Below are positions 12,781-64,000 of a stretch of DNA of 64,000 nt, piece by piece (position 1 is the first letter of the stretch; each line of letters begins with the position of its first letter). This stretch comes from Octopus bimaculoides. Its lineage: Eukaryota. The position numbers and the translations under genes were made by a program. Under the pieces are notes generated by a model that was not told the DNA's origin, did no database searches, and saw only the letters and a program-made list of their open reading frames with translations. Where the stretch lies: the NCBI RefSeq assembly GCF_001194135.2, contig NC_068985.1:26020919-26084918 (forward strand), given 5' to 3'.

Positions 12781-12789
12781 AAAATAATA

Positions 12790-13625: not shown

Positions 13626-13674
<49 letters not shown>

Positions 13675-21013: not shown

Positions 21014-21400
21014 TTCAAGGTCTGCTGTTAATTTCAGACTGGTGGGTGACCACAGCTGTGAGCAGTAATCCAGGCGGCTGAGCACGAATGTCCTCCAGAG
21101 TATCATCATGGTTTCCTTATCTCTGGTTCTGAATGTTCTCAGGATCCATCCAGCCAATCGTCTGCACTTTGTTGCCATTCTGGTAATGTGCACTTGGAAA
21201 GAGGTATCATCACTCATGTCGATACCCAGGTCTTTCACTGATTTAGGCTCTGGGATTGAAATTCCCTGTGGACCAGTGTACTCTGTAAGTTTAATATTCA
21301 GTTTTGGACGTTGGTAGCACAGGGCTTGGAATTTTTCAGCATTAAACTGCATATTATTGTCCTCAGCCCATATATAGATTTGGGTACAAGACGTCACAAA
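21014..21400 (-). mobile_element. CR1/L2-group LINE, RT C-terminal fragment
   Basis: WAEDNNMQFNAEKFQAL...KDLGIDMSDD...GWILRTFRTRD...LSRLDYCSQLWSP. Confidence 0.85.
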
Positions 21401-33029: not shown

Positions 33030-33356
33030 CCACCTTCCACTGGTATCTTCTACCATGGTTCTGAGCCAAACAATGCCTTGTAAGTGAATATGGTAGATGG
33101 AAGCTGTGTGGTGGCCTGATGTGTGTGTGGGGGGGACGTATGTGCGTGTGTGTGTCTGTGTTTGTATTTGTTCTTGCCCGCCATGCTTCACAACTGGTGT
33201 TGGTTTGTTTACATCCCTGTAACTTGACAGTTCAGCAGAAATGACTGATAGAATAAGTACCAGACTTAAAAATAAGTACTGGGATCATTTTGCTAAACTA
33301 AAGCCCTTTAAGGTGGTGCCCCGACATGGCTGCAGTCCAGTGACTAAAGCAAGTAG
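33030..33356 (+). mobile_element. SINE
   Basis: Same family as 1..333. Confidence 0.7.
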
Positions 33357-34290: not shown

Positions 34291-34500
34291 ACTCTTTACT
34301 CTCTTTTTTACTTGTTTCAGTCATTTGACTGTGGCCATGCTGAAGCACCGCCTTTAGTCAAGCAAATCGACCCCAGAACTTATTCTTTGGATGCCTAGTA
34401 CTTATTCTATCAGTTACTTTTGCCGAACCGCTAAGTTACAGGGACCTAAACAGACCATCAAGCGATGTTGGGGGGGACAAACACAGACACACAAACATAT

Positions 34501-34536
<36 letters not shown>

Positions 34537-34620
34537 NNNNNNNNNNGCCATGCAGTAGGAATGAACACGGAACCATGTGGTTGGTAAGCAAGCTACTTAC
34601 CACACAGCCACTCCTGCACC
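34291..34620 (-). mobile_element. SINE spanning a small gap
   Basis: Reverse complement of the same family, with a tRNA-like head at about 34560-34620. Confidence 0.75.
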
Positions 34621-36548
34621 TATTACCAATTATTTTCAATTATCTGAGTAGTTTTAAACTTATGAAAAGAAAGCTTATATTACTCAGAATATATGATGCA
34701 AGGGCTAAATAAAAATCTAAAAACAAACATAGACATTTAGGATAAACTTAAGAAAATGCTTTGGACAAGCAAAGGAATAAAAGACTGAGAGCAACATATT
34801 AGTAAGGAAACTCTAATATACCATACTTTATTTGTTATGAACACTGTGAATTTTGTTTTACAGTGGTTAGCTTCATAGAGTAAAATATTCAACGTCACTG
34901 CCAAATGTTTCTCAAATATCTCTTAGTCATTCCAAAACACCTAAAAATTTAATGTGCCTACAAACAGAGACTGGATGTATAACCATGACTGGAGAGCCAA
35001 TAGAATCAATAAAACAATATGTAATTTCATTTCATTAAAATTACATGGTTTGCTGCATCAAGAATACAATCACCCACTTTACTATTAAAATTTCATGCAG
35101 CAGATGTCCCAGGATAATTTACCCTATTCATTCTTTCAAATTATCATGCCTCTTTGTGTTCGTTCACAAAAACAGCTACATTTCTCTAGTTTAGGTTTAG
35201 GCAACCGTTTCAAGAAGTGGGCTGCATAAGACATGGTTCATCATCAGGCAGGCTGCACTACTAAATAAGTTCAAGGTCATTTTTCATTAAGCATTCCATT
35301 CAGAAAGTCCTTAAGACCACTGTTAGCCCATTACTGCTCTAGGCATTCTTAGAATCCCAGTTATACTCAGCTTTCCTGATGAGATCTAGTAAGACCAAGA
35401 TACATATTTTTGTGCAATTTTTGTCAATGTACATCTATATACAATTAATTTATAAATTTTAATTAGTTATAATTTGGAAGATTGCTTCTCCAGTTTTTTT
35501 CTTTTTTTTTTTCTTTTTTGACAGAATTAGTGATTTAGATAATGACTGCATACATCATTTAGAGTGTTTTTAAATAATTAAAATTCCTTGTTTTACTACC
35601 TATTGCTATTAAGTTTCTCTGCAGCAGGCATCCCTACTCAGCTAATCTTAAAATTCCGGTTTCATATTTACAGAAACATTATTCCTAGAATAAATACCAA
35701 ATTACTTAATTTATCAGAGGAAAAATATATATATTTTATTATTGTTCTCTTTTTTAAAAATTTTATTTCTGATAAATATTAATTAAAAAATTTATTCTAA
35801 ATAGGCAGATTTCATAATATTCAATTTAGAATTTCTAACAAAAATGAATAGGCATCAATAAGAAATGAAATAATATGACAAAGAATGCTAAATTTATTAT
35901 TAGAATAAAAATTATTAATTTTTCTGCATCGCCTGTAAAAAAAGGGGACTAGAATGAAAAATTCGAGCAAGGGATAACAATATTCTTAAGTATTTAATAA
36001 GCACAGAAAAATACAGGACAGGAAGTAAGCAGAAAATAAGAGGAAAGAGCTTAAAATATTGCAGCTAAAATAAAATTTGAATGGGTTGCCAATTAAATAA
36101 AATATTCAAATAAGCCAAACTATTCAATACTTATCAATTACCTTTCACCCAAATTATTTTACTATTGCTAAGCTTATGCAAATAAATTTTCAATTATTTT
36201 AATAAATGAAAATAAAGTGATCACTGCCATAGTATTTTATAACATTAGTAATTAAAATATTTTTTATCTACTAAAATTTTTTACAAAAGTAAAGTAAGTA
36301 GGTAAATAAATTAAACGTTTGACTATAATAAAATTTAAGCCTATTTAAGTAATGAAATTTTTTCTTTGTTTTATTTTTGGCAAAATTATTTTACTTTACT
36401 TTTAAAATATTAATTTTTAGTTAGTTAACTGTTTGTGAGTTCATTTTACTGTTAGGTCCTCTAAGTTTCCCTCAAATAAATGAAGATGTCATAGAATTAA
36501 TCATAATGAAAGAAAATAAAAATCATCTTTATTGCACTGTATTAATAA

Positions 36549-36922: not shown

Positions 36923-38067
36923 ACAAAAATGAATCTCTATTTCAACAAGCAAAGTTGCTAGTTCTAAAATCTCTACAAGAGATGTAAGTAGTAACTCTAC
37001 TGAAATGTAATGGTTGTTACCACCCCAAAGTAGTTGTTCTGCATAGAACAATGTTACTACTCTTTTTAACCCCAGGAGGACACCTCCAGCTGGTTAATGA
37101 CACAATATCTGTGTCTGATATAGTGCAAACAAGGGAGCAAACAGCTCCCACCTAGTGGTGACAATTTTTATTTGATACATAGGAATTTATGATAAAGTAT
37201 CAGATTATTTATATCAAATTTTATATTTAGCTGCAGTATTTTAAGCTTTTTTTTATTTTAGGCTTACTTCTTGTTCTGTATTTTTCTATATTAATTAAAT
37301 ACTTAAGAATATTGTTATCCCTAGCTCGCATTTTTCATTCTAGTATGTTAAGTATGTGTAAATGGACTTCTTTCAGTTTCCATGTACCAAATCCATTTTC
37401 TAAGCTTTGGTTGGCTTGGGGATATAGAAGACATTTGTGGAAGATACCATGCAGTCAGACTGAAGCCAGAACCATGCAGTTGGGAAACAAACCTCTTACC
37501 ATACAGCCACACCTGTACAACTTTCTGAATTTGGCTGTTTGTAATGTTTTTACAAGAAAATTTAATCAAATTGAGATGAAGCAAATTTAACTAACCCTTG
37601 CAATAGCGATGATAAATTGCAGTTGTGAATATGGTTGATAATTATGTTGATTTTGCAGCCAATTATACTTAGTAAAATATATCCCATGCAGAAGGAAAGT
37701 TATGGAATTCAATTTCATAATTCTATATATCTTTTTAAAATGTGTGTAATGGTAATAAGAAACTTACAGAATAAACTACATTAATAAATAATTTTGTTGT
37801 ATCACAAGAGAATTGTTATGCTAATGATATACATATGCCTTACTCTGTTTTATCTCTTTTATTATCAATTGTCAATTGGTTAACATGTAACTATTAGCTA
37901 GATGACTAATAATGATTAAAGAAATGAATAGAACCAGTGTTTGTGTTTACTATTGGCATAATTATCCACCTGAGATATGCAAATATGTTTCAACACAAGA
38001 ATTCATATCAAGAATCTTGAAAGCCATTTACAAAAACAAAATAATAAATTATTCATTTTTCAGAATC

Positions 38068-38125
38068 ATGAAGCAAATTGTTCTGTTTCTTGGATTTTTT
38101 TTCCAAATAAATTTAGCAGCATCTT
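38068..38125 (+). CDS. exon 1 (signal peptide) of giant octapeptide-repeat protein
   Basis: attcatttttcag acceptor, ATG, MKQIVLFLGFFFQINLAAS (basic n-region, hydrophobic core, small-residue end), perfect gtaagt donor in phase 1; T|AT joins the 42617 exon in frame. Confidence 0.75.
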
Positions 38126-38759
38126 GTAAGTATCATGAAAATGCTTTTTCTTTATCAGAAAATTTGCTCTACAGTAATTATTTTATTTTACTATAAATGA
38201 TTTTACTTCAAATTATTTTACATTAAAATGTAATAAAACATAAGAACCATGATAAAAAATACTTTTCTTGTTAAAATTCAATTTAATTTTTTCTACTCTT
38301 ATCTTGGCTTTAATATTTAATGCATGTACCTTTGCTCAACCAATGCAAATATTTGGTTTCACAGGATTCTTTGCATTTGTAGTACTACTCTTCTCATCTC
38401 TCAATTTAAACTCTATCAACTCTACTATTTTCTAATATTAATTGCTAATGTTTATCATTTAAATTCTACAAACCATCTATTCTTTCTTTCTGCATTCTGA
38501 GCTAAAATCTATAATCTGTAGGTTTTCCATGCTTAAATAGTGTAATATATTCAATTTAGCTGGCATGTTATTGTTAATCTACATCTATTGTAACATAGAG
38601 GCAATAAGGCTAAAATAATAAGCTTATGTGATCATGTGAAAGCTCAATTGATCAAACAACTGAAAACTCATCTTCAGAACCAACACAGATCCATGACCTT
38701 GGCAAAAATGGTTAGAGTAAATGACCCTGCTCAAAGAGTGTGTCTATAGATTGGAGAGC

Positions 38760-41260
38760 AGGAGAGAGGATTTATACCTTTGGTGGTCAGGATGATATCC
38801 TGCATTTGTGGGGTCTCTATCTTCAGGTCACTCCTCCTCATCCATAACCACCAGTCCTCTGTATCTGTCTTTGCGTTCACGCTGACCACACTGACCATAC
38901 ATTTTGCAAACTGACCATACATTTTTTCCTTCCATGCTTTTTTTTTTGTATTCATTTTTTGTTTAAAGTTTTCTTTCATTACACAATTTTCAGTTTTGAC
39001 GGTGTTGGCCTTCTTCATGTTTCAACAATGGCTCCATGGCATTCTTTATATACCACCCTAAGCTGTTTTCTTCTGCTTTGATACAACCCTGACAACTGAT
39101 CAAACCTCTCCCACCCACTCTTCTGGACAAGTACAGCCTATCGGTGTCACTCTTAGGGTGGAAGGCTCTGTGTACTGTCAACATTCTGGTCTTGGTATTC
39201 ATTTTCATCACTTCTCCTTTTGCCATTTTATAATTCCCACTCCATACCAAAGTGATGCTGTGGCTCACATATCAACTGCTTTCTTTTTATTCCATCCAGT
39301 CAATTTTGAGTGCAACACCAACCTTAGTCTTTGGAAATACTCTATCCTCAGCTGCTCTTTTATTTCCTTCTCCATTATCTCATTGGACTCTGGTACACCA
39401 AAGTATTTGTAGCCTTCCATTTCAATTTATTTAATCAAGTCTGTTTGGTAATTCTATTTTTGCTAGGGACTGTACCTTGCCTCTTTTTAAGATTATTCTA
39501 CACTTCTTGAGTCCAAATTCCCTTCTAATATCATTACTAAAACAATGAACGGTGTTCACCAAGGAACTCACTTGTGTTTCATCCTTGTCATACAGTTTCA
39601 AATCATCCATGAAGAGGAGGTGGTTGATTGTTTGGGATTTTCCCTCCAGTTGGTACCCCAGGTTCATTTTCCTAAGTACCAAGGTCAGGGGTATCATGCA
39701 GAGAACAAAAAGCAACAGAGATGGTTATCACTCTGGAAAATCCTTCTTTTGATACTCAAGGTGCCCAAGCTTTTTCTGTAAGATGTGGTTTTATGGTAAG
39801 AAACTTGCTTCCCAACCACATGGTTTTGGGTTCAGTCCCTTGTATTGTACCTTAGGCAAGTGTCTTCTTCTGTAGCCTCAGGCCAACCAAACAAAGCCTT
39901 GTGAGTGGATTTGGTAGACGGAGACCAAAGTTACCAAAACTGTAAGTTCAGTTTTCCACTCAATCATACTTCTCTTCAGGAAACAAGTTGCATTCCTCAC
40001 AATTCCAAACAGATCTAGGCACCCGATGATTCACAAATGTGGAACCATATCATAAGCTTTACAGTAGTCAATCCAAGCCATTCCCAAATGTGTTCTCCTT
40101 CATTTACAATCTTGCATTGCAATTTTGTCTATCAATAATTGATCTTTGGTACCTCTGCATCTCCTTCTACAGCCTTTTTGTCCTGTCAGTAATATATCGT
40201 TCTCATCAAGAAATTTGTACAGTTCTTCTGCAATTCCTCCTGATAGTAACTTCCACATTAATGAGAGGCAAGAAATTGGTCTGTAATTGTCAGAAACATT
40301 TTCCTTTGATGCATCCTTCAGACACAGCACCATTCGCCCTTTTGTAACCAGCCCAGGATTGCCCTGGGATCAACTTATGGCAACTACTGAACTTTTTTAT
40401 CCAAAATCCCTGTACACCATCAGGTCCTGCTGCTTTTCAATTGCTTATCTTTTTTCTCATATCTCTGATACTGTCTTCTGTGAAGTGGATAGCTTCTTTC
40501 TGGGGACAAGAATCGGTTTGCTTCAGGCTGCAGAGCCATTCAGCTGTAGTATTTATTATGTTGTTCTTGCTTACTCCATATCTTACCCCTTCATCAGCAT
40601 CATAGACTAATCTTTCACGTTTTTTATCACCAATAATCTCTTCAAAAACATTTTTTGGGTCGGTTCTAAACAATATGTTTTGCTGGCATTACTTAATCCG
40701 TTGATCAAACCTAGTTAGCTTTGCTTGTTTTTACAAGTATGCACTGCTTCAGTTCTTCAGTTACAACATTCAGGCCTTTTGTAACTACACCATACTTCTT
40801 CCTAACTTTTTCAAATTTACACTCATTCTTAAGTTCTCCATTTCTTTTCCTGACAAGCATTGGACACTACACTGTTCGAGGAGTTTATATCTTTTGAAAT
40901 TCTCCATTTCCACCAAGGTTGCTTATTTCCTCTTCTATCCATTACTGTTTTGTTCTCAGTAGTTTTTTTTTTCAATAGTAGTTTTCAATCTCATCCTTTC
41001 TACCACAATTCTTCTAGCAGCCTTGAGAAGATGATTTGTTTGTGTGATGTTCTTTGTTTCAATGTGTCTCTATGCATTATTGACTTTACTCATCTCTTGA
41101 TTTAGTCTCCATTGGTTAGCCTTCTTAAAGTCACACATAAATTCTGTACCTTCAGTATTTAATAGATCCAAAATCCTATCTATTATTAATCGGTCTTCAT
41201 TGTTTGAGTAGTTATCATTATCATTATTATTACTAAGTTGGCCAACTGACAAAACTATTG
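38760..41260 (-). mobile_element. R4/Dong-clade LINE, RT region, degenerate, antisense in intron 1 of the giant gene
   Basis: [15 protein letters not shown]...[52 protein letters not shown]; interrupted by a SINE at about 39785-39927. Confidence 0.85.
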
Positions 41261-42299
41261 TTGTTGTTGCTTACTATTATATCTATTGTGGTAAAATCTA
41301 ATAATTTAGCCAGTGGGGCTTAAATGCTACAGGCACAAATAATTAAAATGTTCTAAGACACATGCCTCTTTTTCACAATCCCAACATGTATATAACATAC
41401 AATTCCATTGTTTCTTATTTTTGAAGTAGGCTTCCTATTTTTGGAGCAATGAAGCATTGTAGGAAACTATGAGTTGATAATCCACCTCAATGGCTCTTTT
41501 TTCCCTGTTTTCAACTCACACAGTAGTATGACCTTCCTCAATAGAACTTCACTGACAACACTGTAGATAACAGTCATCATCAATTAACATTTGTGAATGG
41601 AAGTCACAGGAGTAATGTTTGCTGCAACATACATGCAACACAAAGCAAAGTTGCATTCATCTGCTTCTTCACCAAATCATAAACACTAACAGTATATGTA
41701 CTGTTTGGAATGGGACGTTCAGCAGAGACAACTTTGTCAGTTTCTTGTAATGTGTTGTAGCTCTTTGTTGTTATAAAAAGAAAATGACAATTCTGAAATT
41801 TAATTATGTTCACATAGACTACTAATTGTCCTAAAACACCAGATTTGCAATCTTGTAGAATTTGCTGCTACTTCAGTTTGAAAACTTCCCTCTAAATTTA
41901 TTTATCATCCCTCAAGATTTGTTCACCTTTCATTATGTTCAAACACACACACACATACACACACACCTTATCTATCCCCTACCTCTAATCCATCTCTCAC
42001 CCTCCCCATACACTCATGCAACGTCTACCCACCAACACTCCATGTTCTTCTATCCCCACTGATTTCTGCCTGAAACTTTAAAGGCACACCTTGACTTCTC
42101 ATCACCGCTATTTTTATCTCACTCTAGCTACAAATGGTCAGTCTCACTTTCTCTTCTATAATGCAAGTTCCCATGTAGCTAACTCCTCTAAACTAAGAAA
42201 CCTGTTCTGTTCTGGCCCCTTCTCTCATAAAGCTGCTTCCTTCTCTACTGTAGTCCCACTCAGCTGAAGGGCATCTTAGTTTTACAAGCTGCATAACAA

Positions 42300-42490
42300 T
42301 CTCACTAATACTGAGGTCACAAAAAAAGTACACTCTGTAAAGTGGTTGGCATGCATAGGCACATCCAGCTGTAGAAACCATGCCAAAGGAGACACTGAAG
42401 CATGATGCAGTCTTCAAATCTGTTGGATCCTGTCAAACCATTCAGCCTATGCCAGCATGGAATATGGACTTTAAAAGATGATGATGATAT
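42300..42490 (+). mobile_element. RTE 3' tail remnant with (GAT)n
   Basis: catccagctgtagaaaccatgccaaa...gcctatgccagcatggaa...gatgatgatgat. Minus copies also lie at about 13670, 19195 and 25860. Confidence 0.6.
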
Positions 42491-42616
42491 ATGAGTGAGT
42501 GTGTATGTGTGTGTGTGTGTGAGTGTATAAATGTTTGCTTGTGTATACACACAAATGAACACACTCAAAAATGTTTTCTTTTTCATATTACTGATTAACA
42601 TACATTTACTTTCCAG

Positions 42617-45600
42617 ATAAGTGGCCATCACACATTTCCGCAAATAAGCCACTTCTTTTGCCAAATACTGTTCAAGAGACAAACAAATACCCAAACCAGG
42701 TTTCTGGGAAATTAGTAACTAAATTAGTACCAACAACACAAATTCAACAACCAGAAAATATACAGCAATCTTCACTGTCACAAATGAGATCCATTAATCC
42801 TTTTAAACAAGCAAAACCTATAAATCCTCTGATGGCAAAATTCTTGGGAACAAGTGATGTATATGCACCAGAAAGGCAATACAGAGAGGTGAAGAGACTT
42901 GAAGTGATTCCAGAAGCTGAAAATAAAGTAATTTTACCAATATCACCAGTGTCAATGAAGAATAACATAGAAAGAATATTTCCAAGTTTAAAAACAAAAA
43001 ATTGGATAAAAACAAATAGAAAAATTGGACAAACTGAAAAAAAGATATTGAAAGAACTTTACAGAACATTGCGGAAGAAGCAAATTCCACTTAATAGAAT
43101 GCCTGTGACAACGAAGAGTATCAAACCCAATAGTGAGAAACTATTGGCTCTAGCAATGAAAGAAGTAGTACAAAGAATGTTGAAGAAAAATGTTATGCAA
43201 GAAAAAATGTTAGGATTGGAACCAAGACTAACAAAGGAAATGATAGAAAATTATTCACAAGAAAAAGAGCCAAGAAATTCAAACAGGGAAATATTTGTGA
43301 AAGACACAATGCTAAGACTATTATCAAGTCTAATAAAGAATGTATCTTACAAAAGAATGCAAGAAATTGAAAGAAAACATAGACATGAAGGAAGGCAGAG
43401 AAGGGATACAAGAATATTGTTAACAAGGACAAAACAAGGGGTATTACAAGAGGCAGATCCTAGAAGGTTATCAAGAATAGTACTAGAGATGTCACCTAAA
43501 CCAGTGGTAGGAGTTTTGCCAGGAATTGCAAAAGTTATAACACCTGGCCAAGAACAAAATGTCTTAACAAGAACAAACCATAGAAACTCACCTGTAATAG
43601 TGTATCCTGCAAATGTACAAAGGATCTTGCCAAGAATGAATTACCAAAAGTTACCAGGATTATTACAAATATACCAGCCAAATATATTAGAAAGAAACGA
43701 GGGGAATGTAGTATCCAGACCATTCCATGCAATGTTCCCAGTAATGGCTCCAAATGTATTGGCTGCATCAATACCAGCTGTTATTCAAAGAACACCAGAC
43801 AACACAGGAACTCATGGACTTTTACAAGATGTAAGGCAAGATATGTATAACAAAAACATTAATAGAATGCCAAAAATGTTACAAAATGGTGTAACAGGAA
43901 TGATACAAAATGAGGCACCAGTAATGGTGCAAAGCTTGGTACCAGAGAAGGTTCATGGTGTGATGCCAGGAATGCTGCAAAATAGTATGCCAGCAATGCT
44001 TCAAGATGGCATGCCAGGAATGCTGCAAAATGGTATGCCAGTAATGGCACAAAATGGTATGCCAGGAATGCTGCAAAATGGTATGCCAGGAATGGCACAA
44101 AATGGTATGCCAGGAATGCTGCAAAATGGTATGCCAGGAATGCTACAAAATGGTATGCCAAGAACGGCACAGAATGGGAGGCCAGTAATTGTACAACGTG
44201 TAATGCCACAATTTCAAGAAATCATATCACCAGGAATGTTGCAAAATGGTATGCCAGTAATGGCACAAAATAGTATGCCAGGAATGCTGCAAAATGGTAT
44301 GCCAGGAACAGCACAAAATAGTATGCCAGGAATGCTGCAAAATGGTATGCCAGGAACAGCACAAAATAGTATGCCAGGAACAGCACAAAATGGAATGCCA
44401 GGAACAGCACAAAATAGTATGCCAGGAATGCTGCAAAATAGTATGCCAGGAGTGCTGCAAAATGGTATGCCAAGAACGGCACAAAATGGAAGGCCAGTAA
44501 TTGTACAAGGTGTAACGCCACAATTTCAAGAAATCATATCACCAGGAATGTCTCAAAATATAATACCAGGAATGGTACAAGTTATGATACCTGGAATTAT
44601 GCAAAATGTGATACCAGAAATAGAAGCAGGAAAAATGCAGCATGTAATAATTGGAAGAGATAAAAAAATGATATTAAAACCTGTTCAAGATACAGCAAAT
44701 ACATATGCCAATTCAAGGCAACAAAATGATGAGAAAATGTTAAAAAATGACAACAAACAAGAAATAGTTAAAAAGAATTCTATAAATAATTTGATGAATG
44801 AGGGGGGAAAACAGTCAATAGAAAATTGGCAAATATCAAGAACATCAAATGCACCATCTCTAGAATTGAATAAAAATCCACATAAAATGTATGAGAATAT
44901 ATTTGAAGCAAAGGAATTTAAGATTCAAGGAATCCCAGATAGGTCATCATCAGGAAGCTTGCAACAAATGTTACCACAAATTTCCCATAGAATGCAAATG
45001 CTATCTGGATCTATGCAGCAACCACCATTAACTATTCAAAAGATGAAAGTTCAATTACAACCATATAAATCTGAAAGGAGTCAATACATGTTACCTGGAA
45101 CTGTAGAAAGAATGGTTGAAGGAACAGTGCAAGAAATGTTACCTAGGGTTGTTGAAGAAATGTTAATAGGAAATGCACAAAGGATATTACCAGAGAAAGA
45201 GCAATTGATGTTACATGGAACAGGACAAGAGATACTCACAGCAAAAGGACAAAGGATACAACATGGAACTGGACAGGGCTTGTTACTTGGAACTGGACAA
45301 AGGATACTACCTGGATTTAGACAAGGAATGATACCTGGAACTTGGCAACAGATGTTACCTGGAACTAACCAACTGATGTTACCTGGAACTAACCAACTGA
45401 TGTTACCTGGAATTGGACAACATAGGTTAACTTTAACATTGCAAAGAATATTGCCTGGAACTGGGCAAAGGATGTTGCCTGGAACTGGACAAGGAGTGAT
45501 ACTTGGAACTGAGCAAGGAGTGTTACCTGGCACTGGACAAAGAGTGGTACTTGGAACTGGACAAGGGGTGTTACCTGGAACTGGACAAGGAGTGGTACTT

Positions 45601-48600
45601 GGAACTGGACAAGGGGTGTTACCTGGAACTGGACAAAGAGTGGTACTTGGAACTGGACAAGGGGTGTTACCTGGCACTGGACAAAGAGTGGTACTTGGAA
45701 CTGGACAAGTGGTGTTACCTGGAACTGGACAAGGAGTGGTACTTGGAACTAGACAAGGGGTGTTACCTGGAACTGGACAAAGGGTGGTACTTAGAACTGG
45801 ACAAGGGGTGTTACCTGGAACTGGACAAGGAGTGATACTTGGAACTGAGCAAGGAGTGTTACCTGGCACTGGACAAAGAGTGGTACTTGGAACTGGACAA
45901 GGGGTGTTACCTGGAACTGGACAAAGAGTGATACTTAGAACTGGACAAGGGGTGTTACCTGGAACTGGACAAGGAGTGATACATGGAACTGGACAAGGGG
46001 TGTTACCTGGAACTGGACAAGGAGTGATACTTGGAACTGGACAAGGGGTGTTACCGAGAACTAGACAAGGAGTGATACTTAGAACTGGACAAGGGGTGTT
46101 ACCTGGAACTTTACAAAGAGTGATACTTGGAACTGGACAAGAAACGATACTTGGAACTGGACAAGGGATGTTACCAGGAACTGGACGAAAAGTGATACTT
46201 GGAACTGAGCAAAGGATGATACCTGAAACTGGACAAAATACATTACAAGGTATGTTACTTGGAACTGGACAACAGATGTTACCTGGAACTGTACAAATGA
46301 TGTTGCCAACAACTAAGCAAGTTTTGTTACCTGCATTTCGACAAAGGATGTTACTAGGAACTAGGCAAGTAATATCACCTGGAATTTCACAAAGGGTGTT
46401 ACCTGGAACTTTAAAAATAATATTACCAAGAACTGGGCAAGGAATATTAGCTGTAAGTGAGCAAGGGATGTCACATGGAACAGAAAAAGGTGTGTTACTA
46501 GGAATTGAACAGAGGATGTTACCAGCTACTATGCAAGGCATGTTACCTGGAACTGCAAAACGTATTTTATCAAGAACTGGGCAAGGGATGTTACCTGGAA
46601 TTAAGCATGGACTATTACTCAAAACTGGGCAGGTGATGTTACCAACTTCTAAGCCAGGGATACTTTTCAGAACTGGGCAAGTGATGTTACCAGGAAGTGA
46701 GCAAGTGATGTTACCATCTACTGAGCAAGAATTGTTACTTGGAACTGGGCAAGAGATGATGCCTGGAATTAAGCAAGAGATATTACCTGGAACTGTAGAA
46801 AGAATATTATCAGAAACTCAACAAGAGATGTTACCTAGAACTCACCAATGGATATCACCAGCAAATGAACAAGGAATGTTACTTGGAATTGGTCAAGGAA
46901 TGTTACCTGGAAATGAACAAGTGATTTTACCTAGAACTATAGAAGGAATATTATCAGACACTGAGCAAAGAATAGTAACTAACACTGGGCAAGGGATATT
47001 ACCTGCAACTGAGAAAGTGAAGTTACTTGCAATGAGGCAAGGCATGTTACCTGCAACTGGGCAAGAGATGTTACCTGGAATCAAGCAATGGATGTTGCCG
47101 GGAACTCAGCAAGGGATGATGCATGCAGTTCCACAAAAGACATTACCTGTTATTGTGCAAGTAATATTACCTGGAACTGGACAACAGATGTTACAAGGAA
47201 CTCAGCAAAAGATATTACCTGCAACTGAGCAATGGATGTTACCTGTATTTAAGCAAGGGGTATTACCTGGAATGGGTCAAGGTATGTTACTTGGAACTGG
47301 GCAAGGGATACTACCTGGAACTGAACAGGTAATGCTACCAGGAAGACAAGGTATCTTTGTACAGGGGAACTTACCAGAAAATGTGCAAAGGATGTTACCT
47401 AAAAATGAGAAAGGTGTGTTACCTGTAAAAATGCAAGTAATTTTACCTGCAACTGAACAAGGATCACTACCTGGAACTGTAACATGGATTTTACCTAGGA
47501 ATGAGAAAAGGATGTTAAATGCAACTGGGAAAGGAACATTATCTAGAATTGTGCAAGAAACATTACCAGGAATGAAACAAAAATTCCTTCTTGGAAATAG
47601 GCAAGGTATGTTACCTGGAACTGGACCAGAGACATTTGCAGGACATTTTCAAAAGGCCTTAGTTAAAAATGAACAAAATGTGTCACCTGTAACTGGACAA
47701 CAGATATTACCAGAAAATGTACAAGAAATGTTAAATGGTACCAGTCAAGGAATTTTACCAGTAGAGCAAAGCATTTTGCCTGGAGTTATACCAGAAATAT
47801 TACCTGAAACAAGGCAAGTGTATTTTCCTGAAACTGTGCCCAATCTGTTATCTGGAGCTGGGCAAGGAGTAGTAGACGGAAATGTGCAAACAATATTAAC
47901 TGGAAATAGTCAGAGCTGGTTCCCAAATAATTTGCAAGGAACCATACCTAAAAATGTGCAAGCTGTGGTACCTGGAAATGTACAAGGGACATTATTAGGA
48001 ACAGTGAAAGAAATACCGCCTCCAGCTAAGCCAGTGATGATACCAGGAACTCTTAAAGAGATCTACCCTGGTAATTGCCATTGGACTGTACCTAAAATTG
48101 GGCAAGGGGTGTTACCAGAAAATGGTCAATGGATCTTTCCTGGAAATAGACAAGAGATGGTACCTGGAACTGGACAAGGGATGTTACCTAAAACTGGACA
48201 AGGGGTCTTACCACTAACTGAGCATAGAATCTTAAATGAAAATATGCAGAGGGATTTAACTGAAAATATTAATAACATCTTACTTAGAAATAGGCAAAAT
48301 GTGTTACTTATACCTGTGCAAGGAATTTTACCAAGAAATCATCAAGGGATTTCACCTGAAACTGGATATAGGGTTTCATCAGACAATGTTCAAGGGAACT
48401 TCATTGGAACTAAGCAGGAGATGTATCCTGAATTTGTTCAAAGCTTAGGTAACAATCAGCAAGGGAGTTTAGCTGTAACTGAGCATGGAAATTGGCAAGG
48501 GATGTTACCTGGAGCTGTTAGAGGGGCCTTTCCAGAAACTTTGCAACTGACCTTACCACAAAACAGACAGGGGATTTTACCTGGAACTGGGAAAGAGTTG

Positions 48601-49531
48601 TTAGCTGTGCCTGGACAGAGGATGTTACCAGACACAAAGCAAAGGATCTTAGTTGGAATTAGAAAAGATATATCACTTGGAAGTGGGCAAAGTATGTTGC
48701 CAGCAAATAAGCAAAGTATCTTACTCCCAAATGTTCAAGGAGTGTCACCTGGAAACTGGTATGTGATTTTACCTGGGACTGGACAATCAATGGTATCAGG
48801 GACTAGGGAAAGGATATCACCAGGAACTGGATATGGAATTTTACCAAAAAATGTGCAAAGGATCTCACTTAGTCCTGGGAAGATGATCTTTACAGGAGGT
48901 AGGCAAAGTGTGTCACCAGAAGCAATTCAAGGAACTTTACTAGGAAACAGACAAATGATATTACCAAAAAATGGTCAAAGGGTGTTATCTGGAATTGATC
49001 AAGGGATATTACTTGCAAATGGACAACAGAAGTTTGGTGGACATGGGCAACAAATTTCCTCAGGAAATATGCAAGGGAATTTGCTGAGAACTGTACCAGT
49101 GATGTTACCTGGAACTGTTCAAAATGCAGAACAATATACATCAAGAATGATGCCAGATATGAGAGGATTAGCAATAATTCCAACGTTATCACAAGGAATA
49201 AATCCTAAAATGTGGCAAAGAACAGTGCCAAACAGGCTAAATTTGGGAATAGTACAAAACTCACTAAGTACCACACAAACACGTTTACCTGAAATATCAG
49301 TAGGAAAAATGTATGGAACATTTACCCAAGCTAAAAATGGAATACCACAAAGAGCAAAACACACAAAATTACAAAACAAATTTAAATCAATACCAGTTAA
49401 CCCCCAGATGGGTTTAATGACTTTTCTGGAAAGTGGAAATAATAGACAGATTTGGAAACCATCTTCAAACCAACATCATGTGGCGGAGTTTGAATTAAAT
49501 CAGGAAGCAGCTGGCTCTAAACTACAAAAAG
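42617..49531 (+). CDS. exon 2 (6915 nt) of giant secreted Gly/Gln/Pro/Met/Leu-rich octapeptide-repeat protein
   Basis: catttactttccag acceptor; stop-free for over 2300 codons in an AT-rich genome; aaag|gtaagt donor; phase 1 to 1. The ORF-track extension past 49531 is intronic (CA)n. Confidence 0.93.
43966..44590 (+). repeat. coding tandem repeat block 1: 24-bp unit ccaggaatgctgcaaaatggtatg (PGMLQNGM)
   Basis: Direct reading; includes a 312-bp internal duplication (44161 versus 44473). Confidence 0.95.
45094..49130 (+). repeat. coding tandem repeat block 2: 24-bp unit (PGTGQGVL-like), near-perfect 48-bp dimer core at about 45478-46150
   Basis: Direct reading; the 8-aa register persists with few slips for roughly 165-170 units. 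Confidence 0.92.
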
Positions 49532-49549
49532 GTAAGTCGGGTTTTTATA

Positions 49550-49858
49550 CATATGTACATATACATACATACATACACAAGCACACATGCATGCATGCAT
49601 GCACACACACACACACACATACATATGCACACACACACACATACATATGCATGCACACACACACATCTGGTGTATGCAGTTGATGTATCATACCTCAAGT
49701 ATTATACCCAGCACTGCTGCATGGATGAATTTTCACACACCCAGTCTGATGTTTATTGTATTTTTAACACAGTATTTCCTGATGAGATGTTATCTTGGAA
49801 CAAATACTGCAGTAACTGGCCTATCAAGTGTACATACTTTAAGTATGATACATAGCTG

Positions 49859-49914
<56 letters not shown>
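49550..49914. repeat. (CA)/(TACA) and (TC)n microsatellites in intron 2, running into a gap; (AGG)n follows the gap at 50893-51017
   Basis: Direct reading. Confidence 0.85.
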
Positions 49915-51506
49915 NNNNNNNNNNNNNNNNNNNNNNNNNNNNNNNNNNNNNNNNNNNNNNNNNNNNNNNNNNNNNNNNNNNNNNNNNNNNNNNNNNNNNN
50001 NNNNNNNNNNNNNNNNNNNNNNNNNNNNNNNNNNNNNNNNNNNNNNNNNNNNNNNNNNNNNNNNNNNNNNNNNNNNNNNNNNNNNNNNNNNNNNNNNNNN
50101 NNNNNNNNNNNNNNNNNNNNNNNNNNNNNNNNNNNNNNNNNNNNNNNNNNNNNNNNNNNNNNNNNNNNNNNNNNNNNNNNNNNNNNNNNNNNNNNNNNNN
50201 NNNNNNNNNNNNNNNNNNNNNNNNNNNNNNNNNNNNNNNNNNNNNNNNNNNNNNNNNNNNNNNNNNNNNNNNNNNNNNNNNNNNNNNNNNNNNNNNNNNN
50301 NNNNNNNNNNNNNNNNNNNNNNNNNNNNNNNNNNNNNNNNNNNNNNNNNNNNNNNNNNNNNNNNNNNNNNNNNNNNNNNNNNNNNNNNNNNNNNNNNNNN
50401 NNNNNNNNNNNNNNNNNNNNNNNNNNNNNNNNNNNNNNNNNNNNNNNNNNNNNNNNNNNNNNNNNNNNNNNNNNNNNNNNNNNNNNNNNNNNNNNNNNNN
50501 NNNNNNNNNNNNNNNNNNNNNNNNNNNNNNNNNNNNNNNNNNNNNNNNNNNNNNNNNNNNNNNNNNNNNNNNNNNNNNNNNNNNNNNNNNNNNNNNNNNN
50601 NNNNNNNNNNNNNNNNNNNNNNNNNNNNNNNNNNNNNNNNNNNNNNNNNNNNNNNNNNNNNNNNNNNNNNNNNNNNNNNNNNNNNNNNNNNNNNNNNNNN
50701 NNNNNNNNNNNNNNNNNNNNNNNNNNNNNNNNNNNNNNNNNNNNNNNNNNNNNNNNNNNNNNNNNNNNNNNNNNNNNNNNNNNNNNNNNNNNNNNNNNNN
50801 NNNNNNNNNNNNNNNNNNNNNNNNNNNNNNNNNNNNNNNNNNNNNNNNNNNNNNNNNNNNNNNNNNNNNNNNNNNNNNNNNNNNNNNNNNNNAGGAGGAG
50901 GAGGAGGAGGAGGAGGAGGAGGAGGAAGAACAAGAGAGGGGGATTAGAGGAGGAGGAGGAGGAGGAGGAGGAGGAGGAGGAAGAACAAGAGAGGTGGATT
51001 AGAGGAGGAGGAGGAGGATATGCATTAGTATGCAAAGAACAAAAATTTACTGATCATATGAGACAGGTACGAAATAGGCATCAGATACAAAAACCATGGA
51101 TATGAGGTAAAAACATGCAAACTACAGAGTAAAGTTGAATTTTGTATCATGAAGTATAAAAACTGGTAATTTACAACAAACTAAATGAATACTGCTTTAT
51201 TTATCTTAATAAATGAAACAAAGTTTATGTGTGTGTATACTTCTTATGGATTCAAAAACTGGGTTACCAATTTGGAGGGCTTTAGCTAAGGCAGGCAACT
51301 CTATATCTTAGATAAAGCATAATGAGAAAATGTTTAAAATACATAGAGTTTTACCTGGGAATGAAACTCCAAAGATATACTGTCAACTTTATTAGTATTT
51401 TTTAGTAGACTGTCTTTTAATGTGAAATATGTTTGTCTATGTTTTGTTTAGCCCAGAGTTGTGGCTGATGTAGTAGACATATCGCATTGATTACCACAGA
51501 CACACT

Positions 51507-51552
<46 letters not shown>

Positions 51553-52004
51553 GTTGTGGTGAAAAAAGAAAACGTTTTCTCAGAATATTTTGCACAATAA
51601 CTTTTGAGAAATCTGGACAGCTTTCTTACTGCAAACTATTCAACTTCAAATTAGAATTGTTCATTCTTGGAAGTTAAGTAGACTGAGATGTACATATATT
51701 GTTATCATATAGAGTGGAAGTTCAATACAAAGTTTTGAACTCATTATCTTGTGGTTAGTAATCCATTACCTTAAATTTGAAGCCATTAAGTCTTTAAACA
51801 TTATTTTACTGGGTTTAGTCTTTCCACTGTCGCCATGATGGGGTATCATCTTCAAAACTTTAATTGGTCATACTCACCTCAGTACATATTTCAAGTGGGA
51901 ATCTATTTTATAGATCTCTGCTTGATGAACTACTAACTTTGAGGCATAATGGGACACAATATGCGATTTACCAACAAATGTAAACACACACACACATATT
52001 AGGT

Positions 52005-52160
52005 GCAAGAATGACTGTGTTGTTCAGAAGTTTGCTTCCCAACCACATGGTTCTATGTTCAGCCCCTTTGCATGGTACCTTGGGCAAGTGTCTTCTACTA
52101 TAGCCATAGGCCAGCCACAGACTTGTGACTGAATTTGGTAGACAGAAACTGCAGTGTTGT
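52005..52160 (+). mobile_element. SINE 5' fragment
   Basis: agaagtttgcttcccaaccacatggttctatgttcagccc...ccttgggcaagtgtcttctactatagcc, as at 8870-9010 and 39785-39927. Confidence 0.7.
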
Positions 52161-53649
52161 TCATCAGAAAATGACTGAAAAACATGTTTATAAAGAAGAG
52201 TTGTTTGCTTCATACTCCTCGTGTGCTGATTCTGCCCATAAGAAAGGAACAATTAATACAATGTGGTTGTAGGTTATAACACCCAGGAAATGTCAAGGTG
52301 CATTGCTAGTCAATTAATAAATCATTGGAAAGAAGTAGTTCCTTTCATAAGTACAAGGTTTCGTATGTATATTAAAGAGCAGGAACAAGATGTTAATGAT
52401 GCTCATTTGTTTCTTAAAGGCATTAGAAATAAGACATCATCATTTTAAGTCCATTTTCCATTCTGGAATGAGGCATTAGTGGTTTAGTGGTGCAACTAAG
52501 AACTGAAACTTCCTTGTAGACTGAGCCAATCAGAAGTTTACATCATCTCTTGTTTAAATGCAGCCATGTCCTGAGATTTTTCAAATAAGCTTTGCTACTA
52601 CAATCTACAGATTGTATATAATTAGAATTTGTTTTCTTTATTTCATTAGCTGCTAACTCAACAGACCAGAATATTACTCAAGAGGTGAAGGCTTCAGTTT
52701 CAGTCACCAGTATTACATCATATTCTTGGATAATATATATTATTCTGCTTGCCTTAAATCTCCTGGTTGGAATGTAGATATATATATATATATACACACA
52801 TATGTATATCATACTTTAAGATAAAGCATTAGAAAATGTGAGTATCCAGCCACAAAATACTTGCTAAATGAACTTATTAAACCTTCTTAATAACCTATTT
52901 GCTTCATCTATGGGAGAGTTGCAATTGGTTGTATTGACAGGGCTGACCGCCTTCTAGTTTAAGGGTTTATATCTATTTTGCCACTTATGCAGTCCCATGT
53001 CCCTGACAACGATTTTTAACTCTTCTTGGTCTAATGCACTTAAGTGTAAAACTGGAAATATATGAAAATATATTGGAATGTTATTTGGCAATAGAAGTAG
53101 TGAACAATCAGCAAGTGTGTCAGCTTGTATTGATACCTTCAAATTCTCCCGTAAATAAAATTTGTAATAGACTAACATACTACCCAAGTGAAGATATGTA
53201 TCTTGACCACTTTATTCCTAAAAGAAAATTGGTTAATTCATCTTCTGAGAATGTCACACATAAAAGGAATGTTGACTTTTTTTTTTAATCTTAGTTTTAA
53301 CATTTGTTTTTTCATAGTAGCATGAATTAGAAATATAGATATTTGTAAATGGATTATTGGAATAAATATTTTAAAATAAAGGTTCAATTAAAACTAGATA
53401 AGATACCAGTCCAAAAATGTAAACAGATTCAAACCAACATTTTGGTTAAATTAGTCAAAGAAATAAAATATTGTATCTGGCTCTGCCTTTGGCAAGAGTT
53501 TCAATGCTTCACTTTGTATTTAGTAAACTAGCACAAGAAACTCACATTTTGATTTCCTTAGAAATACATGTAGTTTTCCTGATTTTTTATTAACTTATAT
53601 AATATCTCTTATCATTATTGGATAAAGTCTTTATTTCATTTTTCTTCAG

Positions 53650-54920
53650 ATAACTTGGCAGTACCAGTGAAGGGTATATTTATGCAAAAGGTTCAAACGT
53701 CTTCAAACCACCAAAATGATTCCAAGAATCCAAAGAGTTTAAAACAATCATCAACCCAACAAAGGAGGCAGAACATCATTAAAAGATCTATTTTTCACAA
53801 TCATGCCTCCGCATCTGCACCTCTTAAAAAACCAAGAGCTCTGAGAAACAACACAGCTAATTTAATCAATTCAGTAATACCACAATTAACAGCATTTAAG
53901 CAATCAAGTCATGAGCCAAAAGGTAGTTTAAAACATCCATTTTCTGATTATAAATCTCATGTACAGATGCTTGATAATGGCTTTAGAACACTTTCAAAGA
54001 AAGACACATCTCACCTACAAACAATAACTAATTCAGAAATGTCTCATTCTCAAGACAGAAACAAAATACCAAATACAAATATTGGTATAAAGTCAACTGT
54101 ATATGCAATGCCAAATAATGGATACACTACACCTTCCACTAAATACAAGTTTTACACACTAAGACAAAATGGTAAAAGTTATTCAAGATTACCAAGCAAA
54201 CTGCTACAATTGCTTCAATATAACCATTTGAATCTTTATGCTGGGAAAAATGTACCATTTGAAAGTTTTAGAAAGTTATCACCAATACTTTACAATCCCT
54301 CTGTGCCTTTTAGTATACAACAATCTAGACCTTACATACTTCAACAAATACCAGTAATGAATTTTGAAAGGCCAGTTACTAGAGATGGTCCTTACATAGT
54401 AGAACCAGGACTACATTATCTTTATCAGCTACCACCATCAGGATATGAAACTCATATTTCAGAAACAGTACCAATTGGTGCAAACCAGATATATATGACC
54501 AACAGAGGTAAAGTGTCTTATAACCAGTTTGGAACCTACAACCAAGGTAAAACGTTATTGAGTAAACCTCCTGTTAAATATAATTCTACATTAAAGCCAT
54601 TACTTAATCTTGAAAAAAACTCGAAAATTTTGAATTCCCTCAATTTAAAACACACTAACAAAATTGAACCAAAGACTAAAAATGTGTACATATCAAAAAT
54701 TATTCCTGAATCAAATGATATTACCAGAAGAAATAAAAAAACAATTAGCAAAGATGTTAAAACTGCACTTACAAGAAATTCAGAGGGGATACATTTGGAT
54801 TCCAATTCTACAAGTAAAAGAGGTATAAGAGGGATTTTTTCATTACAAAATGAACGAGCAAAAAAATTTTCTTTGCATAATTATCATGATTCTGGTTATG
54901 AAAATAATCACAATAGATAG
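53650..54920 (+). CDS. terminal exon 3 of giant repeat protein (basic, Asn/Ser/Tyr/Pro-rich)
   Basis: tttcatttttcttcag acceptor; G|AT joins exon 2 in frame; 1271 nt to TAG; AATAAA at 55219 and 55346. Joined CDS is 8244 nt (2747 aa). Confidence 0.85.
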
Positions 54921-54968
54921 AAACAGAAATATATTTCTTAGAAAATGCATATATGCATACACACACAT

Positions 54969-55004
<36 letters not shown>

Positions 55005-55157: not shown

Positions 55158-55520
55158 TCAGAAATACATGTCAATTCATATTTAATAATATCTAAGAGCA
55201 ATAAGATTACTAATTTAAAATAAATAATTATCAAATTGTACTGATGAACCAAGATAATTAAGCTTAATTAATCCACATGCTAAATGAAACAATTCTGTTA
55301 AAAATTCTGAAAATCATAATGGCAAAATAAGTTGGTTTTTTTTGCAATAAATATTCTGCTTAGAAAAATAATATCAATATTTTATTAAGCTTTACGATCA
55401 ATGTTTAACTGTAAATTAATGCAAAAAGATTATAATCTTCAAAAAAAAAAATACAATAGTAAAATATCAGTTTCTTAGTAAAAGATACAAGGCCTTGTAT
55501 ATTTTCGTTCCTTATTTTAT

Positions 55521-55889
55521 CTTTTATGTTTTACTTGTTTCAGTCTTTGGATTACAGTGAAACTAAGTACTGCCTCGAAGAGTTTAGTGGAGTAAATGGA
55601 CCCCTGTGCTTATTTTTGAGTCTGGTGCCTATTCTATTGGTCCTTTTTGCCACACCACTAGGTTACAGGGATGTCAGCAAACAAACACCAGGTTGTCAAG
55701 CAGTGAGAGTGGCAGGAGGAACAAATACAAAAACATGCATGTACATATATACATGATGGACTTCCACACAGTTTCCTTCTACCAAATTCACTTGCAAGGC
55801 ATTTGTCAGCTTGGGGCTACAATGGGATGGAACTTGAAACCATGTGGTTGCAAAACAAGCTTCTTAACCACACAGCCATGCCTGCACCT
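55521..55889 (-). mobile_element. SINE
   Basis: Reverse complement of the 1..333 family, including the tRNA-like head at about 55830-55889. Confidence 0.75.
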
Positions 55890-56237
55890 GAGAAAGGTTA
55901 TAATCAATTGAATCAACTAGTATCCATTAAGGGTATAAATACTGGAGAGATGACGGATCAGGTTAAATACATCATTTGAATTCAGAAAGTAAAGAGGACA
56001 AGAACTAAAATAGAAATTATGGAAAGAAACAATATGGTCAGATTTCTCAAAATATTGGTACCCACTGATGAGGTAATTACAGGACCGAGAATGACAGTAT
56101 GTCATACTACAGACTCATCTAAATAATGCCAGCAGAGGAAAATGGATGCTAAAATAACATTCATGATGATAAGAGTAGTGGTTGTAATGATGTTGTTATT
56201 GGTGGTGGTGGTGGTGGTGGTACCTGAATCAAACCAG

Positions 56238-58260: not shown

Positions 58261-59406
58261 TCAAAGTGCTGTTACAGCAATCCTCTTCAATCTGGAATAA
58301 TAAAAGTTGGCAGGTCAGCTTATTAGGTGTATAGTAATGATATATACTAAAATTACAATAATCTAGGTGATTATAACTGTATCTCCTGAAAGTCTCAAAC
58401 CTTCTGGGATGCACGTTGCATTTTTATGCTCCTACATCCAGTCTATCCCTAACCAACCTACCCTCCCTTCCATTCCCACAACTCATGTCTATGCACCCAA
58501 CCCATTCCTGATGAACACCACCTCCCAGCATAGACCATTTTCCTATCACCAATTTTTCTCACAACTCATCTTCCTAACACCCATCAGTTCATCACCCTTT
58601 TAACTACAGAGCTACCAATTAAACTCTGTAATTTTGAGACCCCTACCTTCTCCGCACACTCTCAGTATCATCCCTTATCTCTCTATATCTGCTGAACATT
58701 TCTTTCACCTCCCCTTCACCTGTACACCTCCTCCTTTTCCAAGCAGTAGCCCTTCCAACCCCGCCCCCATATATGGCATTAGAAACGCCATATACCTCTG
58801 ACTTTCCCCTAGCACTGTGCATCACTTTTGCACACGACCCTCCACTCACTACACATCATCTTTACTGCCACCTATTACCTCCCTGACCCAAACCCACTTC
58901 CTCTGCCTTTCCATCAGATATTCATGACTGACCTTGCCTCCACCCATGTTCATCACTCACTGCATCTCCCTCTATCCATCTGCTACTTGCCTCTCACACT
59001 CCCATGAACTTCCCCACTCATACCACTTCTCTTTATTCACCTTCTTGTAACTTAAGAAAATGCCCTGATACATCTTCACCATCCTCCATTATTCCAATCA
59101 GGGTAACCATGTATCTCTCCGGCAGCAAGACACCTGTTCCTGTCCACCACCATAATTTAATATCTCATCACCTAGCATAAAGCCACCTCACGACTCAGCT
59201 GTCTTGTCCTGCTAGTTACTTGATAACCTCATGAGTGCCAGTATCGTGTACAAGCACCAGTACAATCTGTAAAGTGGTTGGTGTTAGGATGAGCATCTAG
59301 ATGTAGAAACAATGTCAAAGCAGACATTATAACTTAGCATGGTTTCTACAGCCAACTCCTTTCAAACCATCAAACCCATACCAGCATGGAAAATGAATGT
59401 TAAATG

Positions 59407-59442
<36 letters not shown>

Positions 59443-59445
<3 letters not shown>

Positions 59446-63894: not shown

Positions 63895-64000
63895 GGTTTC
63901 AGTTTCTGCCTACCAAATCCACAGGCAAGACTTTGGTCAGCCAGGGGCTGTGAAAGACACTTGCCTAAGTTGCCATGCAGTGGTACTGAACTCAAAACCA
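63895..64000 (-). mobile_element. SINE fragment at window end
   Basis: Reverse complement of the ...cttgggcaagtgtctt...gtggatttggtaggcagaaactg family. Confidence 0.65.

Follow-up and report, generated by a model that had tools for sequence, protein, structure and literature searches.

Does a 64,000-nucleotide (nt) window of the Octopus bimaculoides genome (assembly GCF_001194135.2, contig NC_068985.1, positions 26,020,919 to 26,084,918) hold a genuine gene for a giant repeat protein, dispersed over exons that an open reading frame (ORF) list does not connect? An earlier note on this window, whose own positions are used below, had joined three forward-strand exons through canonical splice sites into a single frame. 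We re-derived both the splice sites and the frame, and the join stands: 38068–38125, 42617–49531 and 53650–54920 splice into a coding sequence (CDS) of 8244 nt whose sole stop is the terminal TAG and whose predicted product is 2747 amino acids (aa) long. Exon 1 contributes 58 nt of coding sequence, exon 2 6915 nt and exon 3 1271 nt. Intron 1 (38126–42616, 4491 nt) and intron 2 (49532–53649) are both GT-AG introns of phase 1 with GTAAGT donors, the acceptor of intron 1 reads CCAG, and a pyrimidine tract precedes each acceptor (TTTACTTTCCAG/AT and TTTTTCTTCAG/AT). The mechanical ORF list, re-read here, gives just three disconnected fragments with artificial ends (37912–38196, 42658–49683 and 53655–54920), as the earlier note had remarked. 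The evidence set out below supports a lineage-restricted, unannotated gene for a giant octad-repeat orphan protein that is predicted to be secreted; a coding gene comprising exons 2 and 3 is very probably real.

We divided the CDS into seven segments of 140–960 codons each: the unique N-terminus, the Met-octads, the spacer, the core octads, the degenerate octads, the exon-2 tail and exon 3. All seven are stop-free in the coding frame, and the remaining five frames carry 1–107 stops per segment. Across the 420 codons of the unique N-terminal region there are none, against 8–40 in the other frames; across the 960 codons of degenerate octads there are again none, against 20–107. Because the roughly 1100 non-repetitive codons are likewise stop-free, a repeat unit that happens to lack stops does not explain the open frame. 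Third codon positions are skewed alike in every exon-2 segment (A 47–56 %, C 2–7 %), and exon 2 contains 240 Gln codons (211 CAA, 29 CAG), each a single transition away from a stop.

The reverse strand also carries a long frame, a 513-aa Cys/Pro-rich ORF at 45081–46622 that is limited to the core repeat array and is open because the 24-nt unit is stop-free in that reverse frame. Coding on the reverse strand was rejected: it is open only within the core array and meets stops everywhere else.

That a core array can stay open for 513 codons on its reverse strand nonetheless illustrates how repeats mimic ORFs, and it lends something to the view that the forward frame is itself untranscribed or recently dead, either a frame derived from a minisatellite or a pseudogene still without stops. 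The near-neutral ratio of non-synonymous to synonymous differences per site between repeats (pN/pS, 0.8–0.9) favors the same view, as does the fact that an exon-2 homologue was not found in any sequence search made. We consider it very unlikely, as the non-repeat parts are stop-free (420 + 140 + 140 + 422 codons), the 960 codons of old degenerate octads hold no stop despite the 240 vulnerable Gln codons of exon 2, and the frame of exon 3 has been kept through 152 substitutions and three indels in a relative.

That relative comes from a search with exon 3 (aa 2325–2747 plus TAG), the unique C-terminal region, which returned one protein, P0001 (385 aa, 72 % identity, E = 8e-165); amino-acid identity of exon 3 to P0001/L001 is 72–74 %. 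P0001 lies on 1.5-kb Logan whole-genome shotgun (WGS) contigs of a close species (runs SRR11869384, SRR11869390 and SRR11869391), and with this one relative only, the lineage restriction proposed in the earlier note held. The contigs are genomic rather than cDNA and align to 53375–54978, taking in 275 nt of intron 2 and a conserved acceptor. Nucleotide identity is 91 % over these last 275 nt of the intron and 87 % over exon 3. The internal indels of exon 3 measure 27, 9 and 6 nt; those of the intron measure 3, 1, 14, 2 and 1 nt. By the Nei-Gojobori method, exon 3 shows a non-synonymous divergence (dN) of 0.12 and a synonymous divergence (dS) of 0.24, a dN/dS of 0.5, with pS at 0.205. When the 152 observed substitutions were placed at random with their spectrum kept, 6.4 stops were expected and only 0.06 % of trials were stop-free; the relative has none (P = 0.0006). 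A frame kept stop-free against this expectation indicates that exon 3 has been held open by selection.

The two sequences part ways near their ends. At about 1440–1480 of L001, opposite 54860–54920 of the window, a 1-nt indel in an A-run ends the relative's ORF some 20 codons early (…QNEQAKSLFVA, then a stop). Past the A-run, the relative's other frame reads …FSLHNYPDSDGGNNHNR and reaches the same TAG as the window. Either the frame shifted recently here, or the protein can dispense with its C-terminal tail.

Exons 2 and 3 are separated by an assembly gap. The run of N (49915–50892, 978 nt of estimated length) falls wholly within intron 2, leaving 383 nt of intron between it and the exon-2 donor and 2757 nt between it and the exon-3 acceptor; it is bracketed by simple repeats, (TC)n/(CA)n before it and (AGG)n after it. 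Were intron 2 retained, the exon-2 frame would stop at 49681–49683, ahead of the gap; since the frame ends there and the gap is intronic, the reading frame is never carried across the N run. What may be at stake in the gap is only the correctness of the scaffold join, or a hidden exon. Directly before the gap stand (TC)21 and (CA)n, and directly after it, at 50893–51018, the (AGG)n tract repeats a 55-nt unit 2.3 times with 98 % identity; these flanking repeats probably caused the assembly break.

Because of the 978-nt gap of estimated length, exons 2 and 3 might not form one transcript as drawn: the scaffold join may be wrong, exons may be hidden, or exon 3 may be a separate small gene starting at the ATG at 53682. 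Their compatible phase would arise by chance in 1 of 3 cases, an automatic gene caller treated exon 3 of the relative as an ORF in its own right, beginning at the homologous ATG, and third-position T is 0.37 in exon 3 against 0.21–0.27 in exon 2. On the other side, the two exons share a strand, the exon-2 donor is a perfect AAG/GTAAGT, and the exon-3 acceptor is strong and kept in the relative, with the frame open from the acceptor onward. The tail of exon 2 and exon 3 are also alike (unique, N/K/S/Q-rich and basic), and without splicing the exon-2 frame would run into the (CA)n microsatellite. We therefore regard separate transcripts as quite unlikely and retain the joined model.

The start of the gene requires a different argument. 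Exon 2 has no in-frame Met before aa 76, yet its frame is open for the 55 codons that precede this residue and is closed only 8 codons upstream of the strong acceptor at 42617. Such a startless stretch argues for a coding exon further upstream. The candidate at 38068–38125 encodes MKQIVLFLGFFFQINLAAS and supplies the first base of codon 20. Its peptide carries a Lys at position 2 and nine hydrophobic residues as its core, and A-A-S precedes the cleavage site predicted where the exon ends; examined by eye and by hydropathy scan, it shows an n/h/c layout of MK / IVLFLGFFF / QINLAAS, with Ala at -3 and Ser at -1. We infer that exon 1 encodes a cleavable signal peptide and predict that the product is secreted. 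Phase-1 introns at the ends of signal peptides are reportedly a regularity, described by Tordai and Patthy in 2004. The ATG has the Kozak A at -3, and an acceptor-like TTTTTCAG lies 4 nt upstream of it, so that a further non-coding 5' untranslated exon upstream of exon 1 is possible.

How distinctive is this candidate? It alone, among some 1500 phase-1 ATG-to-GT candidates on both strands (128 kb), passed thresholds of at least 7/9 for the donor score and at least 3.0 for 9-residue hydropathy; these thresholds were chosen after the proposed exon had been seen, and the outcome is support rather than proof. The signal-peptide exon of the earlier note is thus the sole hydrophobic phase-1 candidate on either strand of the window, its peptide being a prediction from sequence. 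The gene could still be real with the wrong first exon, another upstream exon or a start at Met76 giving an intracellular, basic, low-complexity protein of nuclear or cytoskeletal type. Only consensus features speak for exon 1, the 14.6 kb upstream contain 158 phase-1 ATG-to-GT candidates, and strong basicity with K/R-rich ends would also suit a protein associated with nucleic acids. Such a gene is unlikely in our estimation: no other candidate on either strand of the window matches the proposed exon, which combines a textbook n/h/c layout and A-x-S at its end with a GTAAGT donor and a favorable A at Kozak position -3, and the 55 open codons above Met76 speak against an internal start.

With the secreted form as the preferred reading, the mature chain would have a mass of about 299 kDa, an isoelectric point (pI) of 10.3, one Cys and nine N-X-S/T sequons. 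Its computed composition (G 11.2, L 10.3, Q 9.7, P 8.0, T 6.8, V 6.7 and M 5.1 %) agrees with the Gly/Gln/Pro/Met/Leu/Thr/Val-rich product that the earlier note had described. Exon 2 opens with a basic N-terminal region (42617–43878, aa 20–440) that is unique, K/R/E-rich and of pI 10.5; it contains a single R-Q-R-R motif (aa 279) and fades into degenerate octads from about aa 330. A Met-rich array follows (43879–44658, aa 441–700), delineated by Tandem Repeats Finder (TRF), register and octad profile. It comprises about 30 octads of consensus L-Q-N-G-M-P-G-M (TRF period 24, 22.8 copies), has an octad profile of Q100/N82/M68/P96 %, and includes a higher-order duplication of about 104 aa. A Q/K/S/N-rich spacer with no period-8 signal and no stops (44659–45078, aa 701–840) separates it from the core.

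The core array (45079–46230, aa 841–1224), recognized by TRF, register, profile and AlphaFold, is made of near-perfect G-Q-G-V-L-P-G-T octads in a 16-residue super-repeat (GQGVLPGT GQRVVLGT) and has a pI of 11.8. Its higher-order units are 96 nt long (TRF periods 48 and 96, 82–84 % matches), and their copy number may be mis-assembled or collapsed in this assembly. Beyond it, some 120 degenerate octads (46231–49110, aa 1225–2184; register, periodicity and profile) keep Q2, hydrophobic residues at 4–5, P6, G7 and T/N8 as the other positions drift. The remainder (aa 2185–2747) is unique, S/N/K/Y-rich and basic; it consists of the exon-2 tail (49111–49531, aa 2185–2324), which ends at the AAG/GTAAGT junction, and exon 3. 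Two AATAAA matches (55219 and 55346, within 55219–55351), 300–430 nt past the stop, are candidate polyadenylation signals by consensus match only.

Both arrays share the pattern x-Q-x-h-h-P-G-x, of which there are about 195 copies in all. Overall, octads carry Gln at position 2, hydrophobic residues at 4–5, Pro at 6 (62 %), Gly at 7 (53 %) and Thr/Asn/Met at 8. Gln residues have another Gln at +/-8 in 176 instances against 49 expected (maximum 68 in 200 shuffles), and period-8 power for Q, P and hydrophobics is high over aa 400–680 and 800–2160 and absent elsewhere. Predicted tryptic peptides diagnostic of the protein include VVLGTGQGVLPGTGQR, FLGTSDVYAPER and LEVIPEAENK.

Does the octad protein have relatives elsewhere? 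The full-length protein had no match among 5.8 billion clusters, and since the same search missed P0001, which is present there, absence is not proven. The last 704 aa of exon 2 (aa 1621–2324) yielded 8000 word candidates, none of them significant. An exhaustive HMMER search with the first 1200 aa of exon 2 against 1.84 billion representatives gave 481 matches (E down to 2e-32), all within the repeat arrays. Ten of the 481 were inspected and four traced to their source (flatworm, sponge, metagenome). As homologues these repeat matches were rejected, being confined to query positions 396–680 or 820–1196 and never touching unique regions. Macrostomum lignano PAA75235.1 (DSNPGMMQ), Ephydatia muelleri KAL5483755.1 (VTGQVVLQ) and a Joint Genome Institute (JGI) metagenome ORF (QGVPLGTH) have 8-residue repeats of their own, and their unit sequences, organisms and flanking domains differ. 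We class the inspected matches as convergent low complexity, not homology.

Searches for domains were similarly sparse. Pfam searches with exons 2 and 3 and with the N-terminal region gave only a sub-threshold Cornifin match (PF02389; 19.1 bits against a cut-off of 34.8, E = 0.0016) over one stretch, aa 1797–1865 of exon 2. PDB sequence searches with the N-terminus, exon 3 and the octad profile found nothing, nor did searches of JGI metagenome contigs with exon 3 and the N-terminus, or Rfam across the whole window; literature searches for octad peptides found nothing relevant. AlphaFold returned no confident fold for exon 3, with a mean predicted local distance difference test (pLDDT) score of 33.5, and the S/N/K/Y-rich C-terminal region is probably disordered. 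The earlier note's statement that the protein has no recognizable globular domain is in keeping with these results.

The core array behaved differently from exon 3 in modeling. For 128 aa of it, with segments of the array aligned on one another, AlphaFold predicted, in a single model of moderate confidence, an all-beta structure (pLDDT 70, predicted template modeling score 0.63) in which 14-residue strands are broken at Leu-Pro every 16 residues. A numerical Pro+Gly threshold for elastomers was reportedly set out by Rauscher in 2006. The octad arrays have a 2P+G content of 0.31–0.38, below that of elastin-type proteins. A high combined Pro+Gly content keeps elastomers disordered (PMC5703643), and because the octad protein falls below such content, the all-beta model agrees with its composition.

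We lean, with some reserve, toward a real, narrow-lineage gene of at least three coding exons whose product would be secreted, extracellular and structural. In such a protein, exon 1 would supply the cleavable signal peptide and the chain would enter the secretory pathway. Each octad would combine a turn at hydrophobic-Pro-Gly, a short run of hydrophobic residues prone to beta structure and one Gln that hardly varies, and octad arrays may build up into rods or sheets, rich in beta structure or turns, that repeat regularly every 16 residues. Outside the cell, these rods or sheets could self-associate into a fiber, film or gel. Stabilization might be non-covalent, through Gln ladders and hydrophobic stacking, or might come from Gln-Lys isopeptide cross-links made by transglutaminase, with the Lys-rich ends as amine donors; routes other than Cys are proposed because no Cys is available. 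This mechanism of beta stack and cross-link is less likely than the secreted, structural assignment as a whole. Fast evolution together with absence from public protein sets, those derived from transcriptomes included, suggests a specialized, rarely sampled secretory tissue, possibly reproductive. Adhesive, cement, gel or spermatophore roles for the product are guesses.

Several points weigh against this account. The gene model is predicted from genomic sequence, and a product joining the exons, as from a spliced transcript, was not found in searches with exon 3 or with the first 1200 aa of exon 2. The linkage of exons 2 and 3 spans a scaffold gap, and the thresholds that single out exon 1 were fixed with that exon in view. 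The sole relative covers exon 3 alone, and the searches recovered from it no piece of exon 2's unique part; in the exhaustive HMMER search the unique N-terminal region stayed unmatched (395 residues without any match). Within exon 3, amino-acid change (pN 0.11) keeps pace with the change seen in the adjacent intron (0.09), and pN/pS between repeat units is 0.8–0.9 (0.82 for degenerate octads). Together, the exon-3 and between-repeat rates imply that constraint on the amino-acid sequence itself is weak, and the ratio between units indicates that the pattern is conserved rather than the sequence. The AlphaFold input for the core array was a pseudo-alignment of twelve in-register segments of the same protein, not true homologues; repeat sequences can yield artefactual solenoid models; and Foldseek with the core-array model gave no significant match (best E = 0.13, TM 0.29). 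Transglutaminase cross-linking and the tissue are pure inference.

If expressed, the octad protein would be a 300-kDa secreted protein missing from public sets, with a repeat unit not found in 5.8 billion clusters or 1.84 billion representatives. It would also exemplify a kind of gene that escapes the catalogues, in which the repeats fill one long exon and the signal peptide comes from a tiny exon far off. As a candidate material protein, again if expressed, it would offer a simple, designable octad (GQGVLPGT / LQNGMPGM) lying between elastin-like and beta-sheet-forming sequence space. The locus bears on protein-based materials and on lineage-specific secretions, as a well-founded lead rather than a discovery. 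A bolder proposal is that it founds an undescribed family of giant, Cys-free, strongly basic extracellular proteins whose octads stack as Gln-laddered beta structure with a 16-residue period, giving a new biomaterial of a narrow, probably octopod lineage that would come from a secretory or reproductive gland seldom sampled and owe its hardness to Gln-Lys cross-links; this we hold only tentatively and think rather improbable.

The surroundings of the gene are repetitive. A short interspersed nuclear element (SINE)-like repeat is present in at least nine diverged copies (69–83 % identity) on both strands and in both introns, never in exons; copies lie at 210–334, 8877–9011, 33072–33302, 34306–34621, 37376–37519, 39797–39925, 52001–52151, 55480–55900 and 63900–64000. 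The repeat may resemble the abundant octopus SINE. A second interspersed family of about 160 nt includes a copy at 42327–42487, ending about 130 nt upstream of the exon-2 acceptor, with further copies at 344–473, 9296–9356, 11902–12063, 13669–13803, 19193–19351, 25861–26004, 27311–27464 and 59259–59570. Intron 1 contains a reverse-transcriptase fragment on the minus strand (39431–39715; PF00078, RVT_1, E = 4e-4, below cut-off), which indicates that the intron took up a retroelement, and another reverse-transcriptase-like ORF on the minus strand (21014–21460) adjoins a gap. A mariner-type DDE transposase remnant occupies 4674–5195 on the same strand (PF01359, E = 1.4e-14, 173-aa ORF). Two further minus-strand ORFs, at 12385–12822 and 60351–60800, have in common a PHD/C1-like zinc-finger motif (…CTQCKLW[IT]HKRCS…) that scores below the Pfam cut-off, and both are probably copies of one retroelement family. 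A 138-aa ATG ORF of globular-looking composition (1406–1822, plus strand) has no Pfam match and no exact sequence on record; it could be an exon of a neighboring gene or part of a transposon.

In a window this rich in transposon remnants, the long frame might itself belong to a transposable element or an integrated virus. We give this almost no credence. The 2747 aa contain no transposase, reverse transcriptase, integrase, capsid or any other Pfam domain, a second copy or paralogue of the gene was not found within the window, the predicted structure is spliced with a putative signal peptide, and the repeats inserted in the introns end at exon borders.

The octad protein would fall within the familiar class of short-repeat extracellular structural proteins. 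With elastin-type and other Pro-Gly-turn proteins (tropoelastin VPGVG, flagelliform silk GPGGX, byssal preCol flanks, abductin and resilin) it shares long arrays of a short unit bearing a hydrophobic-Pro-Gly turn, as well as a G/V/L-rich composition, almost no Cys and no globular domain, and it would likewise be secreted. The LPGTG within the octad fits [V/I/L]PGXG, V/I/L/M precedes Pro-Gly in 65 of 76 cases, and 21 sites fit [VILM]PG.G. Unlike these proteins, it has a unit of 8 or 16 residues with a near-invariant Gln, and Leu replaces Pro in half of the core units. It further departs from elastomers in its period of 8 rather than 5, its 2P+G of 0.31–0.38, its lack of sequence homology and its beta-sheet rather than disordered model. 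The Lys-Ala cross-linking domains and poly-Ala-Lys segments of elastin are absent, and Ala stands at 2.8 %.

A second group, the transglutaminase substrates (SPRR/cornifin octapeptides, involucrin and seminal-plug proteins), resembles it in an eight-residue period, in the single Gln conserved in each unit and in ends rich in Lys. Unlike the small, cytosolic, Cys/Pro-rich SPRRs, the octad protein has a mass of about 299 kDa, a predicted signal peptide and one Cys. Membership in the Cornifin/SPRR family was rejected, the score lying below the Pfam gathering threshold. From gel-forming mucins it differs in an S+T+P content of 20 %, a single Cys and the absence of any Pfam domain (VWD, C8, cystine-knot). 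From collagens it differs in having neither Gly-X-Y runs in the octad register nor a Collagen Pfam match, and its Gly/Pro/Gln periodicity peaks at 8, with no peak at the multiples of 3 that were scored (6, 9 and 12).

In beta-roll and beta-solenoid proteins (RTX nonapeptide, hexapeptide LbH, and insect and bacterial ice-binding proteins), as here, a short unit rich in Gly leads into a brief hydrophobic strand. The closest Foldseek neighbors of the core-array model, all insignificant (E at least 0.13, TM at most 0.34), are an RTX block V, LbH acyltransferases and an ice-binding protein. Unlike RTX GGXGXDXUX, the octad lacks Asp for Ca2+, and its period is 8/16, not 9/18 or 6/18.

Among cephalopod materials, the comparisons drawn by the earlier note were sound. 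The protein contains no reflectin hallmarks (no [MF]D.{5}MD.{5}MD and no MD dipeptides in 2747 aa) and no suckerin hallmarks (GGY 0, GGLY 0; His 1.6 %, Ala 2.8 %, Tyr 1.6 %), and at 1.6 % His it is not a His-rich beak protein. A new biomaterial family is a possibility. What the octad protein shares with reflectins, suckerins and His-rich beak proteins is its character as a lineage-restricted, repetitive, Met/Gly-containing candidate material protein.

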